This document shows positions 16,687-30,247 of a DNA stretch of 64,000 nt, piece after piece; position 1 is the stretch's first letter; the number at the start of each line of letters is the position of its first letter. Below the pieces are notes generated by a model that did no database searches, had not been told where the DNA came from, and was given only the letters and a program-made list of their open reading frames with translations. Made by a program: the position numbers and the translations under genes. Origin of the DNA: Caecitellus pseudoparvulus. Its lineage: Eukaryota; Protista; Bigyra: Bicosoecida. The stretch lies in the NCBI GenBank assembly GCA_965644315.1, contig CBFFRQ010000030.1:310001-374000 (forward strand). Direction: 5' to 3'.

Positions 16687-18212
16687 TTACTCGTCGTCGC
16701 CACCGACGACCGCCAGGAGCTCCTGCACGCGAGAAGCCATGGCAGCCTTCTTGTCGGACTGGTACTTCTCCCAGCGTGCGGCGACCTTGGCGCGGCGCTC
16801 GTCACCGGAGATCTTCTTGGTCTTCTTGGTCTTGGCCTTGAGCTCAGCAGAGACGGTGAAGGGCTTCTTGGGGGCAGCCACGGGGTCCGCGCGGATGGCG
16901 GCGTGCACCTCGGCGAGCTTGGTGGGGTAGGTCTCCTCAGTCAGGCCGGCAGCGGCGTACTTGGAGAACTGCTGCTGGTTGCGGGCGGCGACACCCTCAC
17001 CCTCAGCCAGAGCACCGTCAGCGACAGCGGTGATCCACTCGCCCAGGGTCTCACCCATGATGCGGCGGCGGTGCTCCTCAGGCTCCCAGCGCTCATCCTC
17101 CTCCTCGGCCTTGCGGTCGTAGCCGGGGAAGTTCTTCACGTTGTGGGGCACATCCAGGCCACCGTCAACGGCACCCTTCAGGGCGCCGAAGACGCGGTTG
17201 CCCACGGTGGTGGCGCGCACACCCACATCCAGGTAGGCACGGAAGGGACGGCGCACGTGGTCGTCGTCATCCAGGCGGTCCATCTCGGTGTAGTAGTCGT
17301 CCTCGGCGACCCAGTAGGTGTTCTTCTTGCGCTGGCCGGCGTGCTCAGCCTCGTCAGCCTCGAACGTGACGATGTCGCCGGTCACCTCCATGTTGCCCTT
17401 GTACGCCTCACCCAGGTGTCCCTCGCGCTGCTTGCCACCGGCCTCGGTGACAGTCTGCTTCAGGCTGGTCAGCAGGCGGCGGGCCAGCAGCAGACCAGTG
17501 CAGTAGGCAGCGGAGTAGTTCTTCAGGCCGACGGTCAGGCCGTAGCGGGGCAGCTCCGAGGAGTAGGCGGCAGCCACGGTGACATCGCCGTTGACACCAG
17601 TGCGCACAATCTGGGTGATGACGTAGCGGTTGGTGATGCGCACGACCAGGCGGTGCTTGGGGGTCTGGTACTTGTTCTTGTCCTGGACCACCAGCTTGTG
17701 GCGCTGGGCGTAGTCAGTCTTGCCCTCTGCGCACGTCAGCACAAAAGGGTGCATGCATCACTTGACAAATGTAGATATCAATCACAAACCGGTAAATGAG
17801 GGCGGCCGCGTGCAGCGGAGGGCGACAAAAGAGCGTGCGCACGACGCAAGCGTGTGGCTGCTGCACAATTCCGCCGCTCACGCCGGTGCGCATCGGGCAG
17901 CTGCAACGCCGCGCCCGCTACGTGCTTGCAAGCCAGTGTCAGCACAAGAACAAGCAACTGGGCCAGCTGGCTCTGGCACCATGCACACACGGCCACATGC
18001 GGCGCAACAGCAAGTGCAGCAGGCGTGCTGCAGCGGCTCAAGACACGTACCACGGCGGCGGCGGAACTTGGTCTGGAACCGCTTGAAGTAAGACTTCGTC
18101 TTGGTGATCTTGATGTAAGGCTGTGCAAGGATGGCCGAGTGGGTGAGGCGACGGCAAGGGGCGCAGTGGATGCTCGGAAGTGCCCTGCGGAAAAAGCGCT
18201 GGCACGCACCAT
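16687..18212 (-). CDS. RPL5: 60S ribosomal protein L5 (uL18); ATG-only exon 1, introns 18121-18209 and 17727-18050
   Basis: KTKSYFKRFQTKFRRRR|EGKTDY, QDKNKY, NYSAAYCTGLLLARR, GNRVFGALKGAVDGGL; strong GC3 codon bias. Confidence 0.97.
17733..17790 (-). ncRNA. Candidate intronic box C/D snoRNA in RPL5 intron 2
   Basis: AT-rich island: C-like GTGATTGA, guide TATCTACATT, C'-like GTGATGC, guide ACCCTTTTGT, then CTGA. The guides look antisense to conserved LSU rRNA segments (from recall, unverified). Confidence 0.4.
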
Positions 18213-23807: not shown

Positions 23808-25484
23808 ATGAGGGAGGTGCTGGCCTGGCGTGGCAACCCTGACCTCGTCATGGAGCTGTGTGCAGAACAAGCCGCAAGTGCAGAGGCTGCTCGCCACTCA
23901 CACCACCCGCCTCCGCAGCGCAGGTGGGAGGAGCGGAGGGAACACCAGCCTCGCCATCCCGAGCAGCACCCTGCCCAGGGCGCGCCGCGGCAGTTGGAGC
24001 CGTCAGTGTGCGTCTTGCGCCTGCACCCCTCCATGGACGACCAGGCGCTCCTGGAGACGTTTCAGCCGCTGTGCCCTGACATCACTTCTGCCCACGTGCG
24101 AATGGATCGAGGCAGGTCCAAGGGGTTTGGCTTCCTGCGCTTCGCTCAGCAAGCAGCAGCCGATGCCGCTGTGCAGCGTCTAGACTACACGCGTGCGCAC
24201 GGGCGAAGACTGCGGGTGAGGCCCGCCACCCGGCCAGGGGAGAGTGCCCCTGCGCTGCGGCCTGACACCTTCCGCCTGCGCATCGAGCCCGTCCCGTTGC
24301 AGTGGTCCGACGAGGACGCCTTTTCGTTCTTCGAAGCAGGGCACCCCTCCCTCAGCAGCGCAACGGTCATCCGCGGCAAAGGCCCCCCCGTGCTGTACTT
24401 GCACTGTGAGGAGCACCAAGATATGCTGCGTGCCATGTACAACGTGCGAGGCATGACCCTGCCGGGTGCCACCGCACCCCCTTCTGCGGGCCCCAAGCTG
24501 CCCGAACACGATGGACCACCACCCCCGGGCTGCAAACTCCCAGAACACAGTCCACCAGCACGAGTGGAGCAAGGCAAAGCCGTGGCGCCTGCTGCTGTCG
24601 TGGCACCGGCTGTGTCCGCCAGCCCTTCCTCACTGCCTGTGGATGTCGGTGACCTGCTGGATGATGACGAAGAGTCGGATGCAGAAGGCGCGTCGGGGGA
24701 CAGGGGACGTGGGGAGGCACAAGCACCTGCTGCGGCCACTGCTTCTGTTGGTGCTTCCTCGTCAACCACTGGCACCGAAAAGGCAGGCGAAGGGGAACAC
24801 GCCGGGCCGCGACCCCAAGCAAAACCTGCGGGCACACGCACGCTGCTGGTTGGCTGTGTCCCACTCTCCTGGAGCCGCCAAGACCTGCTGCGTGCATTCC
24901 AAGATCGGGTGGAGGGCGCAGAGAGTGCCGTCGTGAAACGTGGGCCTGGGCAGCTGGTGGCCAGCGGCGGGTCGGTCACATTCTCAACCCCTGCAGCCGC
25001 TGAACAGGCACAGGAAGTCATGCACGGCTTGCCTGTGGACGAGGACTTGGCCCTCTCCGTCCGCAGCTCGCCCAAACTGCAACTCTCCGAATTCCACACC
25101 CACTTGCACGGGCTGCCAGCGCGTGTCCGGTGGGAAGCTGTCTTCAGCTGGGCAGTGGCAGGCCTGAACGCACACACGCCAGGTGCTGGAAGGCAGGTGC
25201 TGGGGGTGCAGGGGTGTGGCCACCGCGATGGTGCCGTCAAGCTGTTCTTTAAATCACCGCTTGCCCTGCGACAGGCATGGAAAGCGCTGCCGGGGAGGCC
25301 CTTCGCGGGGCGCCCAGTGCAGCTCACAGAGGACGGCGATGGCAAGGCTCCCACGACGACCACCACATCGTCGGGCATTGTGGTGACTCGCCGAGGGCGG
25401 ACCTCCGAGCAGACAGGTGGATCAAAGCGTGCACGGGCTGGAACGGAAAACCCCCGCCTTGCCAAGCTGCCTCGGCAGCACTGA
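23808..25484 (+). CDS. Multi-RRM RNA-binding protein
   Basis: RNP1 SKGFGFLRF with a full RRM, plus two or three degenerate RRM-like units. Confidence 0.75.
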   Translation: MREVLAWRGNPDLVMELCAEQAASAEAARHSHHPPPQRRWEERREHQPRHPEQHPAQGAPRQLEPSVCVLRLHPSMDDQALLETFQPLCPDITSAHVRMDRGRSKGFGFLRFAQQAAADAAVQRLDYTRAHGRRLRVRPATRPGESAPALRPDTFRLRIEPVPLQWSDEDAFSFFEAGHPSLSSATVIRGKGPPVLYLHCEEHQDMLRAMYNVRGMTLPGATAPPSAGPKLPEHDGPPPPGCKLPEHSPPARVEQGKAVAPAAVVAPAVSASPSSLPVDVGDLLDDDEESDAEGASGDRGRGEAQAPAAATASVGASSSTTGTEKAGEGEHAGPRPQAKPAGTRTLLVGCVPLSWSRQDLLRAFQDRVEGAESAVVKRGPGQLVASGGSVTFSTPAAAEQAQEVMHGLPVDEDLALSVRSSPKLQLSEFHTHLHGLPARVRWEAVFSWAVAGLNAHTPGAGRQVLGVQGCGHRDGAVKLFFKSPLALRQAWKALPGRPFAGRPVQLTEDGDGKAPTTTTTSSGIVVTRRGRTSEQTGGSKRARAGTENPRLAKLPRQH

Positions 25485-25598
25485 GGCTTCAAGCCGCGGC
25501 AAGCACCAGTCCTGAGACATGGGCCCTGCTGAACGCACGCGGCTGCTGCTGCGACAGGAGGGAACTAAATGCAGTAGAAATACAGGCAACCACAGGCT

Positions 25599-28500
25599 AT
25601 GGCCGCAACCAGCCCCAAGGCTGGTGTGCACGAGTGGGTTGCTGCCCTTCGCATCAACGCCAGACTGAAGAATATGGGACCGCAGCCCACATCACACGTG
25701 CTGTCCAGCAAGCTCGCATCTGCCAGACAGATGCATGCAATGCAGCCAATACTCTCCGACTGTGGCACGCCTTGGGCTGCTTTGCAAGCGCGCGGCGCGA
25801 CAAGGCGGCTGCGCAGCACATCAACGTTGCAGCATGGCAACGCAGCAACTCTCTGACGCAGGCGGTGAGCACAGCGTTCTCCGCGCCCCAAGGAGGGTGT
25901 TACGCCGCGGCCTGACACGTAAACCCATCAAGTCTTCCATCATTGTCCCTGTCGCGCAGGTGCAGCCGCTGAATCTGTGCCCGCGCACCACATCAGCGTT
26001 GCAGGCGCCGTCGCGGAATTTGAGAAGTATCGCTGGTGGAAGCGGTCTGATGACGCACGAAAAGGCACCCTCATCCAGTTCGTTGAAACCCTGCTGTCCA
26101 GTGATGAAGACTCTGACGCCATCGCTGCTGCTATTCGCGCCATCGCGGGCTGCCCAGTGAGACAGCGCCCAAGCCACGCCCGCTGCCCAGCGCATGAGGC
26201 ACGCAAGTCAACCCTCTCCAACCCTGCAGCGCTTCCCGCGAGTGGAGACCCTCTCCTTCCTCCAGGAACCAGGCATACTCACCACATTGTTTGAAGCCTT
26301 CTGTGCATCGCCTTCGAGCACCAATCCTCACCTCGCATTCCAATCGTTCATCCAAGAGTGTGCCCGTTGGCTCCCCAAGCCTTTCAGGCAGTTCATTGGA
26401 GCCCACGATGGGGCCCATTCGATGAAGCTGGAAGCTGCCGACAATCATGAACAACTTCGAGTCCTAATTGTGGGTGTGCTGGACAAGCAAGCCGCAGAGC
26501 TCGCTGACGAGCGAGACAGACAAGCCATGGAGGCCAGGATTCGTGAGCGCTTCGAGGACCGAGTCAGCCAGCTTGAGCCACGCGTACAGGACCAACTTCG
26601 CCGTGTGTTTGGCGCCCTGTCGGCTTCCACGTGCCACCCCGACGCCGTCATCGCCGTGAAGGACGCGTTTGTGCAAGTGCGTGCACTGCCACCACTCCCC
26701 CGCACACCCGCGCAAGCCCCGCACCGAGCCCACGCTGCTGCACCACAGACCCCCTCCTACCGCGTGGACACTGTCATAGCTCTGGCCAGCCCTGCTGTCG
26801 TCGAGGAGGCCTTCCGCTTGCTGGCACAGCCTGGGGGGGACGCACCATCACTGAGGCGGCTCGAGGCATCCTGGCGATCCCTCACGAGCTGGCCGCTGGA
26901 CACCCTGCAGCAGCAACTGTCTGAGGGGAGCCTTGCCAAGCCTGCTGCGGTGTCTCAGGAGGACTGGGACGTGTTCATGAATGAGCACGTGCGAGAGGTG
27001 CTGTACCAGCACACACTGCACACCATGACCGAGCGAGTGGACGCCAGGTTCAGTTTGACGCTGGATCGTCTGGATCGGTCTGCGCGAGGCAAGGCCGAGG
27101 AGGCCTTCGAGGCCTTGTCAGCTTCCACGTGCCACCCCGACGCCGTCATCGCCGTGAAGGACGCGTTTGTGCAAGTGCGTGCACTGCCACCTGCCACGAC
27201 TCCCCGCACACCCACGCAAGCCTCGCACTGAGCCCAAGCCGCTGCACCACAGGCCCCCTCCTACCGCGTGGACACTGTCATAGCTCTGGCCAGCCCTGCT
27301 GTCGTCGAGGAGGCCTTCCGCTTGCTGGCACAGCCTGGGGGGGACACACCATCACTGGTGCGGTTCGGGGCATTCTGGCGATCCCTCACGAGCTGGCCGC
27401 TGGACACCCTGCAGCAGCAACTGTCTGAGGGGAGCCTTGCCAAGCCTGCTGCGGTGTCTCAGGAGGACTGGGACGTGTTCATGAATGAGCACGTGCGAGA
27501 GGTGCTGTACCAGCACACACTGCACGCCATGACCGAGCGAGTGGACGCCAGGTTCAGTTTGACGCTGGATAATCTGGATCGGTCTGCGCGAGGCAAGGCC
27601 GAGGAGGCCTTCGAGGCCCTAGACGCTTCCACGTGCCACCCCGACGCCGTCATCGCCGTGAAGGACGCGTTTGTGCAAGTGCGTGCACTGCCACCTGCCA
27701 CGACTCCCCGCACACCCACGCAAGCCTCGCACTGAGCCCAAGCCGCTGCACCACAGACCCCCTCCTACCGCGTGGACACTGTCATAGCTCTGGCCAGCCC
27801 TGCTGTCGTCGAGGAGGCCTTCCGCTTGCTGGCACAGCCTGGGGGGGACGCACCATCACTGCGGCGGTTCGAGGCATTCTGGCGATCTCTCACGAGCTGG
27901 CCGCTGGACGCCCTGCAGCAACGACTGTCTGAAGGGAGTCTTGCCAAGCCTGCTGCGGTGTCTTTGGAGGACTGGGACATGTTCGTGAAGAAGCGCGTGC
28001 GAGAGGCGCTGTACCAGCACACACTGCACGCCATGACCGAGCGAGTGGACGCCAGGTTCAGTTTGACGCTGGATAATCTGGATCGGTCTGCGCGAGGCAA
28101 GGCCGAGGAGGCCTTCAGTACCCTGGATGCTTCCACGTGCCACCCCGACGCCGTCATTGTTGTCAAGCACACAATGTTTCGATGGCCTGTGCGTTGAGGC
28201 CTCGCCCTCCTCACCAGGAACTTTCGACCCTGGCTGCTGCCACTCACACGTCCCCCACTCCCCGCTGCCCCTCACAGCTTGACAGGGAAGGAGGCACTCT
28301 TCTGGCGCTGGTCACCCCTGCCCTGGTCCAAGAGACCTTTGCCGTGCTGGCTCAGCCTGAGGGTGACGCACAGTCACTGGTACGGTACGAGGACTTCTGG
28401 TGGCGGTGTCTGCGGACAGCACTGCCCCATCTGATCGAGGACCTGGACAGCGGGAGCTTCGAGCGGCCTGACGGGGTGTGTGAGGAGGTTTGGGGGGCTC

Positions 28501-29767
28501 TGGTGGGCACCCATATGTTGCCAGCCTTGAAAACCGCCTCTTATACGAGCACGTTGGCGCGCATGGAACTGAAAGTCCAAAAGGATCTGCGTGATGTCGA
28601 AGGCAAGCTGAAGGATACCCTGCAGCCTGAGATTCGGGGCGTGATGTCCGCGCTCGAAGAAGCGAAAGTCGACCCAGACATCATCACTGTTGTGTCGTAC
28701 TCGTTCGCCATGGCCATGCGCAGGGTAGGTTTTCCTTTGCCCGTGCGCAAAGTGGCGACCTGTGTTTATTGCGTGTAAGAGAAACACTGATCCCCTGCCT
28801 TTGCTTTGCAGTCTCGCATCCAAGGGGAGACAGTGAATGCCCTGCTTACACTCGAACTTGTGATACAGTCCTCAGCTGTTCTTGCTCAGCCCCCCATGGC
28901 TGCGCCGTCACTTGAGCGGCTTGGGGCTTTCTGGGAAGATGTCGTGCAGCGCAAGCCCGGCACGCTTCTGCGCAGGCTGTGCGGAGGGACGTGGGCGCAG
29001 CCAAAAGGGGTCGGCCAGGAGGCGTGGCATGCCTTCCTCGCTGACTGCATCATGCCCCCAGTCCGCGGTTTGCTGTACGCCGCGGGCCAGGCTCGTGCGG
29101 CGGAAGCCTCCAGGATTCGCCCGGACAAGGGCTTCCACGCCATGGACCAGGACACGCGACGCAAGGCAAAGGAAGCATTCAAGCACCTGCATGCGAGCTC
29201 GTGCAGCCCACTCGCCGCCAAAGCAGTGAGCCGAGGTTTTCGGCAGATGAGGGTGCGTGTGGGTGGTTCTTGAACCGTCCACTCCGAACGCACGACCTTG
29301 CCGTGCCTCGCACCTTCGCCACAGCCCCTCACACACTCCCCACTCCCCGCTGTCCTTCACAGCTTGTTCCTGTCAGCGACACAATTCTGGCACTGGTCAC
29401 TCCTGCCCTGGTCCAAGAGACCTTTGCCGTTCTGACTCACCCTGAGGGTGACGCCCATTCACTGGTACGGTACGAGGCCTTCTGGCGGCGGTGTCTGGAG
29501 ACAGCGCTGCCCCACCTGATCGAGGACCTGGACAGCGGGAGCTTCGAGCGGCCTGACGGAGTGTGTGAGGAGGCCTGGGGGGCTCTGTTGAGCACCCACA
29601 TCATGCCAGTGCTGGAGACGGCACATGAGAAGGCAGAGCAAGCCAGGCTGTACCAGGCCAGGCGGAGGGAAGCCGCATTGGTCCTGTTGCGAGCTTGCGT
29701 ACACCAGCGTCAATCAGGCGACATGATCCCTTCTGACGAGGTCTATGGCTGGCTCAGTCGGTTGTGA
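25599..29767 (+). CDS. Unknown modular repeat protein, one module per exon; module exons 26230-26676, 26749-27174, 27253-27678, 27757-28188, 28278-28724, 28812-29252, 29363-29767 (5' exons uncertain)
   Basis: All module-flanking introns are GT-AG and phase 0; splicing removes the in-frame stops and gives one continuous ORF of homologous helical modules. Confidence 0.75.
26622..28157 (+). repeat. Tandem repeat, 504-bp period (426-nt exon + 78-nt intron), about 3 copies
   Basis: Equivalent positions at 26749, 27253 and 27757; the copies are near-identical. Confidence 0.95.
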
Positions 29768-30247
29768 GGGCAGTGCTCGTGCTGCTCAACGTGCTCCGTC
29801 GCATTTGCATGCCACGGAGCACATGCGAAGCAGCAGCCAAGCGGCGTGGAGGGCACTCATCGCAGCCCCCCAGACGGGCCAATGCATGCTGGCCTGTGGT
29901 GGCTTGCAGTTCCAGGGCACTAGCACCTGTGCTGCTCTGACAAGGGAGTTCTGCACTTGCCGCTGCCTGACGGCCGCCCAGCTGGCCATGCAAGTTGTAG
30001 GCACCAGCGCAGCGGGCTGGACGCCTGGGTGCGGGAGGCGTCAAGCAAGCGCGGGCAGCAAGCTGGGGGTCCAGCTACCTGCAAGCTGGGCGGTGCGCGC
30101 AAGTCGCGGCTCCGCATCGTCCCGTGATTCCCACGGCTCTGCGTTGTCACACGCTCCTGACTTTCGCTTCAAAAAGTGGGCACCTCCAATTCTTCTGCAC
30201 AGTGAGGAGATTGCTTGGTGCTATTTCTGCGCCCGCAAGCCGTGGAC

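Follow-up and report, generated by a model that had tools for sequence, protein, structure and literature searches.

Crinkler/RHS-like (CR) proteins combine diverse, often alpha-helical headers with a nucleoside triphosphatase (NTPase), a helix-turn-helix segment, and a restriction endonuclease (REase) domain and are also found in free-living eukaryotes (PMC5289972). The trypanosome RHS genes form a large recombining multigene family of this type with many partial copies (PMC7563717). Genes of the brown-algal ROCO and NB-ARC-TPR classes have been described in Ectocarpus, where their introns hold spare exons and they are under diversifying selection (PMC3341825). Here, we analyze a gene in a 64,000-nucleotide stretch of the Caecitellus pseudoparvulus genome (contig CBFFRQ010000030.1, positions 310,001 to 374,000; hereafter the window), in which seven consecutive exons encode a helical module. 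An initial annotation of the sequence likened this array to the exon-per-repeat shuffling of the brown-algal genes and suggested a role in variable recognition or defense. The evidence below points instead to a header-only member of a CR-like family whose arrays change by recombination inside exons.

A header family with an optional enzyme tail

The seven module exons of the window gene measure 447, 426, 426, 432, 447, 441, and 405 nucleotides (nt), the last including the stop codon, and are separated by introns of 72, 78, 78, 89, 87, and 110 nt, all of which have GT..CAG ends and lie in phase 0. Their translations align as one family (30–94% identity to exon 2), each exon scores E ≤ 4e-48 with a profile built from the seven, and the order of the array is divergent-A-A-A-B-divergent-B. 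In exon lengths, intron phase, and order the initial annotation was exact. Its assignment of one module to each exon holds for exons 1–6, while the last exon carries only the N-terminal part (N-part) of a module, corresponding to profile positions 3–103, followed by ~35 other residues.

The 30.6-Mb genome contains at least 123 matches to the module in 41 clusters of 1–7, about half of which were classed from coordinates alone. The paralogues anticipated by the initial annotation are therefore many, and their module number varies from one to seven. In the fetched loci, each of the 66 junctions called is in phase 0 and occupies the equivalent position (a count that includes overlapping loci twice and one call across a gap), and the introns of the family are 59–110 nt long. 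A related tail of about 1000 residues is encoded at no fewer than 35 loci. Nine module clusters run directly into the tail frame, which combines a P-loop NTPase with a PD-(D/E)xK-like region. The tail on C54 has the Walker A motif GEGTGKT, the Walker B motif LLLVDD, and the nuclease-type motif FPGVD..E-x-T. Walker A is intact in this tail but degenerate in those of C93 and C43, and the late motif takes the general form FPG[VI]D..E-x-T, with predicted strands. In an Atlas feature search, the tail scored 0.96 to eukaryotic clusters, 0.91 to a Crinkler-family cluster, and 0.95 to a DAP3-labelled cluster. Pfam gave a weak match to AAA_22 (E 0.026), and a search against PDB sequences gave no match. 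In an independent NCBI gene model, from another strain (P0058), the same junctions connect the leader with the modules and the tail. The family architecture shown by these comparisons is a leader, a variable number of module exons, a module N-part and, optionally, a P-loop NTPase, a helical region, and a predicted PD-(D/E)xK-like nuclease.

The window gene has six full modules and the N-part, with a stop at 29767 some 35 residues later, and has neither the P-loop NTPase nor an enzymatic C-terminus. Its terminal exon aligns with that of the NTPase gene on C93 (33% identity over 124 residues, E 6e-20) and then stops. No tail homology was found downstream of the stop or elsewhere in the window. 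Because the stop falls just inside the equivalent of the tail exon and the window holds no tail, the gene is classed, by its sequence, as header-only. About three quarters of the module clusters, the window gene included, likewise have no adjoining enzyme tail.

The family is like the CR proteins in having a variable N-terminal header that is distinct from a tail with a P-loop NTPase and a putative PD-(D/E)xK-type nuclease, the tail being found in paralogues and its nuclease recognized by motif. The NTPase of the paralogues is supported by the Walker motifs together with the AAA_22 and atlas scores. It is also like them in being a multigene, clustered, recombining family with degenerate copies in a free-living eukaryote. 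On the other hand, the header here is an all-helical unit of ~142 residues without a detectable relative, repeated one to seven times with an intron in each repeat, and several members have presequence-like leaders. The ubiquitin-like header with the LXLFLAK motif of oomycete Crinklers (PF20147) was not found in the module, which is all-helical and without a Pfam match. Like the trypanosome RHS genes, the family is large and recombining with many partial copies, and one member (C38) is interrupted by a transposon-like open reading frame (ORF). It differs from them in having an intron-rich header and no RHSP match in Pfam and in belonging to another lineage. Taken together, the window gene would descend from CR NTPase-REase proteins and belong to a CR-like family known to date from this species alone, without itself being a CR toxin.

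The ORF in the C38 gene (L032 1064–4933, + strand; second copy in L034) is 1290 residues long, has no Pfam match but Mutator-transposase-like motifs by eye, and separates the last module exon from the nearest NTPase-REase frame. Elsewhere, an unrelated STAND/AAA-like NTPase gene of 800 residues (L044 1071–3473, + strand; AAA_22 and NACHT matches, nuclease-like C-terminus) precedes the C62 module gene by ~1 kb, so that a second CR-like family adjoins the first. In L050 (341–1333) and on C66, C70, and C26, the last full module and the N-part are joined in one frame through a Cys/Lys/Arg-rich linker, which is perhaps an intron turned coding. Many NTPase-REase loci (for example C104:531, C206:869, C87:1611, C125:1866, C93:4028, and C74:4985) are no more than a few kb from the start of a contig, as are the module clusters of C66, C70, C93, and C97. 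These loci are possibly subtelomeric, but the ends of this 215-contig assembly need not be telomeres.

Recombination inside exons

In multi-module clusters, partial modules are found in fixed positions. N-parts come last in 25 of 25 cases and C-terminal parts (C-parts) first in 10 of 10, and none is internal. Every leader of the family finishes with two helices resembling the C-terminal end of the module, followed by a phase-0 GT. Compared with profile positions 104–145, the best leader scores 12.3 bits, above 2200 shuffles (one leader is significant), and the leader of the window gene itself 2.8 bits. The fixed order of the partial modules places the intron inside the repeated unit, and the uniform phase 0 is therefore inherited rather than a sign of shuffling. 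These observations argue strongly for an origin of the array by tandem duplication, with the duplicated segment spanning one phase-0 intron (C-part, intron, N-part), as a result of which the exons read N-part then C-part and share one phase.

The direct traces of recombination are all located inside exons. The A-type tandem repeat takes in the last ~63 nt of exon 1 and stops ~30 nt short of the exon 4 donor. In one C43 gene, the extra module changes parent at residues 77–89, and a metagenome contig (L045) carries a chimera of exons 5 and 7 (B5/B7) at residues 51–66, possibly an assembly artefact. A paralogue of the window gene has been found 136 kb away on the same contig, in an inverted segmental duplicate with 94% identity (window 23843–30111 against L031 3143–9390; G000:C30, ~197.1–203.4 kb) that includes a gene encoding an RRM protein and the whole module gene with the same seven-exon order. 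Exon 7 of this paralogue bears patches of exon 5. Its three A exons differ from each other by 1–5 nt and from those of the window gene by 26–31 nt. The A exons are homogenized within each gene, which is concerted evolution. Module order is kept in all duplicate pairs compared. A six-frame scan found modules on the coding strand of each array only, with no spare or inverted exons.

There is thus strong support for unequal crossing-over and gene conversion, both within exons, as the processes by which the arrays grow, shrink, and homogenize. The repeated duplication seen by the initial annotation is supported, but its comparison with brown-algal exon shuffling is not upheld, as the crossovers are inside exons, the intron is inside the repeated unit, and the introns have no room for spare exons. 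Repeat-sized symmetric phase-0 exons are common to both, as are clustered paralogues with birth and death and a P-loop NTPase partner in some members. However, the repeats here are 142–149 residues long rather than 24-residue LRRs or TPRs, exon and repeated unit are out of register, spare exons, whether intronic or inverted, are lacking, and the selection detected is purifying for the gene as a whole, with near-neutral A exons (see below), where that on the brown-algal genes is diversifying. No Pfam or fold match to LRR or TPR repeats with ROC-COR or NB-ARC was found in the module family, and the window gene resembles the brown-algal receptors in exon symmetry only. Family membership and in-exon recombination together very probably account for the gene.

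In comparison with its paralogue, the window gene has a ratio of non-synonymous to synonymous substitution rates (dN/dS) of 0.41 (p 2e-8). The ratio is 0.10–0.39 in exons 1, 5, 6, and 7 and 0.61–0.99 in the A exons. It is 0.26 in the co-duplicated RRM gene and 0.41–0.51 in six other family pairs. The A-exon pair with the highest ratio reaches 1.5–1.8 (p 0.32–0.45), and pairwise tests found no significant non-synonymous excess in any A pair. Between adjacent A copies, introns 2 and 3 are identical and nine of ten changed codons are non-synonymous, which is not significant; the changes in the A exons cluster at residues 32–45. These ratios indicate a functional gene under purifying selection. 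A variable specificity of the kind that the initial annotation suggested is possible; selection is purifying overall, and no significant positive selection was found.

Gene model and module structure

Table 1. Features of the module gene in the window (+ strand; positions from the first nucleotide of the window).
Feature	Position	Strand	Remarks
Candidate first exon	25735..25864	+	ATG 25735 or 25834; GTGAGC donor at 25865, phase 1, fits next exon; seen in DNA only
Leader exon	25960..26156	+	Ends in two helices resembling module C-end, then phase-0 donor; 3 copies in genome
Module exon 1, divergent	26230..26676	+	A-type in its last 21 codons; other strains carry a replaced middle segment
Module exon 2, A type	26749..27174	+	Structure modelled, seven helices
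Module exon 3, A type	27253..27678	+	94% amino acid identity to exon 2
Module exon 4, A type	27757..28188	+	A type up to its last ~10 codons
Module exon 5, B type	28278..28724	+	Donor supported by spliced contig
Module exon 6, divergent	28812..29252	+	Spliced at both ends in X14; under the strongest purifying selection (dN/dS 0.10)
Terminal exon	29363..29767	+	B-type module N-part and ~35 residues matching start of paralogues' NTPase-REase exon, then stop; dN/dS 0.22
Recent A-type tandem DNA repeat	26614..28158	+	About three units, 498–504 nt; both edges inside exons
B-type direct repeat pair	28227–28537 and 29312–29622	+	Intron end and exon N-part; 80–88% identical

The initial annotation identified the seven module exons, but the gene begins upstream of them, with a probable first exon, a phase-1 intron (25865–25959), the leader exon, and a phase-0 intron (26157–26229). 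The nine joined exons form a single open frame of 1083 codons, as computed from ATG 25834, and the frame is kept in both duplicates. An earlier ATG at 25599 was ruled out as the start, as it has no usable donor and is followed by a stop in two other haplotypes. Intron 1 (72 nt) has no in-frame stop, and it is considered a true intron because its equivalents in the paralogue are 71 nt long. Spliced forms were found in run X14, which is labelled metatranscriptomic, is probably mixed with DNA, and yields assembled contigs of low depth. Two of the six module junctions (28724^28812 and 29252^29363) are spliced in these contigs with GT..AG ends, giving the array transcript support. Among the same low-depth contigs, no joint omits a whole exon. 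Short divergent patches in the leader exon (26027–26074) and in exon 1 (26364–26524) are swapped in other strains (X14, X10, L045, L046) with the frame intact; the exon 1 segment is replaced in X14, X10, and L046. The patches are probably conversions from another paralogue.

The module has been modelled with AlphaFold2 from 41 family sequences, with a predicted local distance difference test score (pLDDT) of 94 and a predicted template-modelling score (pTM) of 0.80. The model has four short helices, a 37-residue helix (residues 70–106), and two closing helices. With the spliced model searched exon by exon, no Pfam match above cut-off was found for any of the modules, the leader, or the tails. 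Foldseek searches of the module model against PDB and viral structures gave nothing at E ≤ 0.001, and Atlas structures gave TM ≤ 0.39. The best hit of a VIA fold search (Z 5.7) is confined to the C-terminal three-helix bundle (residues 86–142) and is a generic likeness, and the best Atlas feature score (0.88) is uninformative. No search gave support for WY/LWY effector repeats, PPR, TPR, or spectrin-like repeats; nor did Pfam or the fold searches match the module to PPR, OPR, mTERF, or RAP proteins. A C-terminal motif common to another protein of the window was also rejected (best E 2.7). The unrecognized helical domain of the initial annotation is thus substantiated by a confident all-helical model that matches no known family or fold in these searches. 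With the fold searches made on the whole module, it is a candidate new fold.

An exhaustive profile search of 1.84 billion representatives returned 38 matches, one of them by chance; P0038 was rejected as a chance match on a repetitive protein. Twenty-six of the other 37 fit fetched loci at 79–99%, six more that were tested fit this genome at 95–99%, and five are unplaced. Outside the genome itself, the profile check proposed by the initial annotation has therefore found apparently conspecific sequences only, the five unplaced matches aside. A scan of JGI metagenomes found no relative of the module. The module looks confined to this species in current data, in which few close relatives are sequenced, so that its absence elsewhere is weakly tested. 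The named matches are filed under Symbiodinium sp. KB8, and the public assembly of that culture (L048, a GCA_905221625.1 contig; CAE7819400.1) contains the module family at 80–95% identity. These sequences appear to be contamination of the culture by this protist. One KB8 gene joins the leader of a C54-type gene to the tail of its neighbor across a gap of Ns, and is either a real recombinant or a mis-join. The uL18 ribosomal protein of the window (16690–17751, − strand) is very divergent, with three relatives at 68–75% and all else at ≤52%, and the organism is, judging by such sequences, a long-branch lineage with few sequenced kin.

Possible roles of header-only genes

We infer with moderate confidence that the window protein is an elongated, non-catalytic binding scaffold, in which small helical bundles would be chained together by the long helix. 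It may act as a regulator, antidote, or decoy for its nuclease-bearing paralogues, whose header interactions or targets it would share, as part of an intracellular conflict system directed against invading or selfish DNA. This role is a tentative suggestion, weakly inferred from gene position. On C93, C32, C43, and C26, header-only genes and NTPase-REase genes face each other in convergent orientation, and on C54 the two kinds lie in tandem. Paired sensor/executor or toxin/antidote genes are known from plant paired NLRs and from fungal Spok and het systems. As in those systems, a non-enzymatic gene adjoins an enzyme-bearing relative at five loci, but here the pairs are convergent rather than divergent and are known from gene positions, and the window gene has no such neighbor. 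The defense role proposed by the initial annotation gains a conflict-type context from the nine clusters that run into a Crinkler/RHS-type tail, while the window gene itself carries no enzyme. As a whole, the explanation by a header-only CR-family member, in-exon recombination, and a regulatory function is the best available, and we place it slightly on the probable side.

Several points weigh against this explanation. The REase fold of the tail relies on motifs and the atlas score, because no Pfam CR or RHS match was found for the tail and its AlphaFold model, built from three sequences, has a pLDDT of 34. The 25 terminal N-parts represent a shared ancestral state and not 25 independent events, and seven of the ten C-first cases are near-identical C38, C54, and C97 genes. 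The near-neutral A exons (dN/dS 0.6–1.0) also fit relaxed constraint. The window gene has no NTPase-REase partner within the 64 kb, a single event may underlie all of the paired loci, and an interaction between header-only and nuclease-bearing proteins is a proposal from gene position.

The main rival is a mitochondrial role, in which organelle-targeted helical-repeat proteins, domesticated from a CR ancestor, act on mitochondrial DNA or RNA in the manner of PPR/OPR or RAP-domain proteins, with the number and type of modules setting the target. Clear-looking presequence-like starts in some paralogues (C43 ML..R-S-M-S-S; C62 MRL..R-T-F-S-S; C38/C54 MLT..) and the DAP3-labelled cluster are consistent with it. 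However, the crude presequence filter also passes 15 of 51 background ORFs, C44, C38 g2, and the C93 NTPase gene have acidic starts, and the module fold is not a PPR/TPR-like solenoid. The window gene has two candidate starts, and its doubtful presequence character (four Arg/Lys and no Asp/Glu in the first 30 residues) holds only if the start is 25735, from which the stretch is poorly conserved in the paralogue. The DAP3 label is probably due to the shared P-loop type. We consider this rival unlikely. A variant that combines both ideas, in which imported CR NTPase-nucleases are held in check or aimed by header-only partners as a mitochondrial toxin/antidote or sensor/executor pair, with specificity reset by recombination among the intron-spanning repeats, is more improbable still.

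Equally improbable is the exon-skipped or shuffled recognition array of the initial annotation. The exons are symmetric, as it stated, which would allow skipping; module number differs among paralogues, the A exons have ratios near 1 with clustered changes, and swapped segments segregate among strains. Yet X14, at its low depth, has no skipping joints, and module order is kept between recent duplicates. Crossovers inside exons, introns too short to hold the spare or inverted exons that were not found, the lack of a significant non-synonymous excess, and a gene without a signaling or enzyme domain also speak against it. The gene could also be a leftover, a truncated CR gene now drifting, with neutral expansion of its repeats and no specific function for its product, as might be suggested by the stop just inside the tail-exon equivalent, the near-neutral A exons, and the degenerate enzyme motifs and broken copies in the family. 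Against this stand the 1083-codon frame open in both duplicates, the spliced transcripts, the low ratios in exons 1, 5, 6, and 7, close to that of the RRM gene, and the fact that most clusters are header-only and likewise under purifying selection. We give the leftover little credence.

The new elements are a confidently modelled helical domain without known relatives, with its fold model and negative fold searches, the RNA junctions, the staggered repeat unit, the selection estimates, and the gene pairing. The case also warns clearly against concluding exon shuffling from nothing more than one repeat per phase-0 exon. A header-only CR-family member shaped by in-exon recombination would place a CR-type conflict family in a free-living protist, where most members have lost the enzyme yet are under purifying selection and several lie beside a nuclease-bearing partner. 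Such a family may offer a testable handle on what CR proteins do in non-pathogens and on how cells shield themselves from them.

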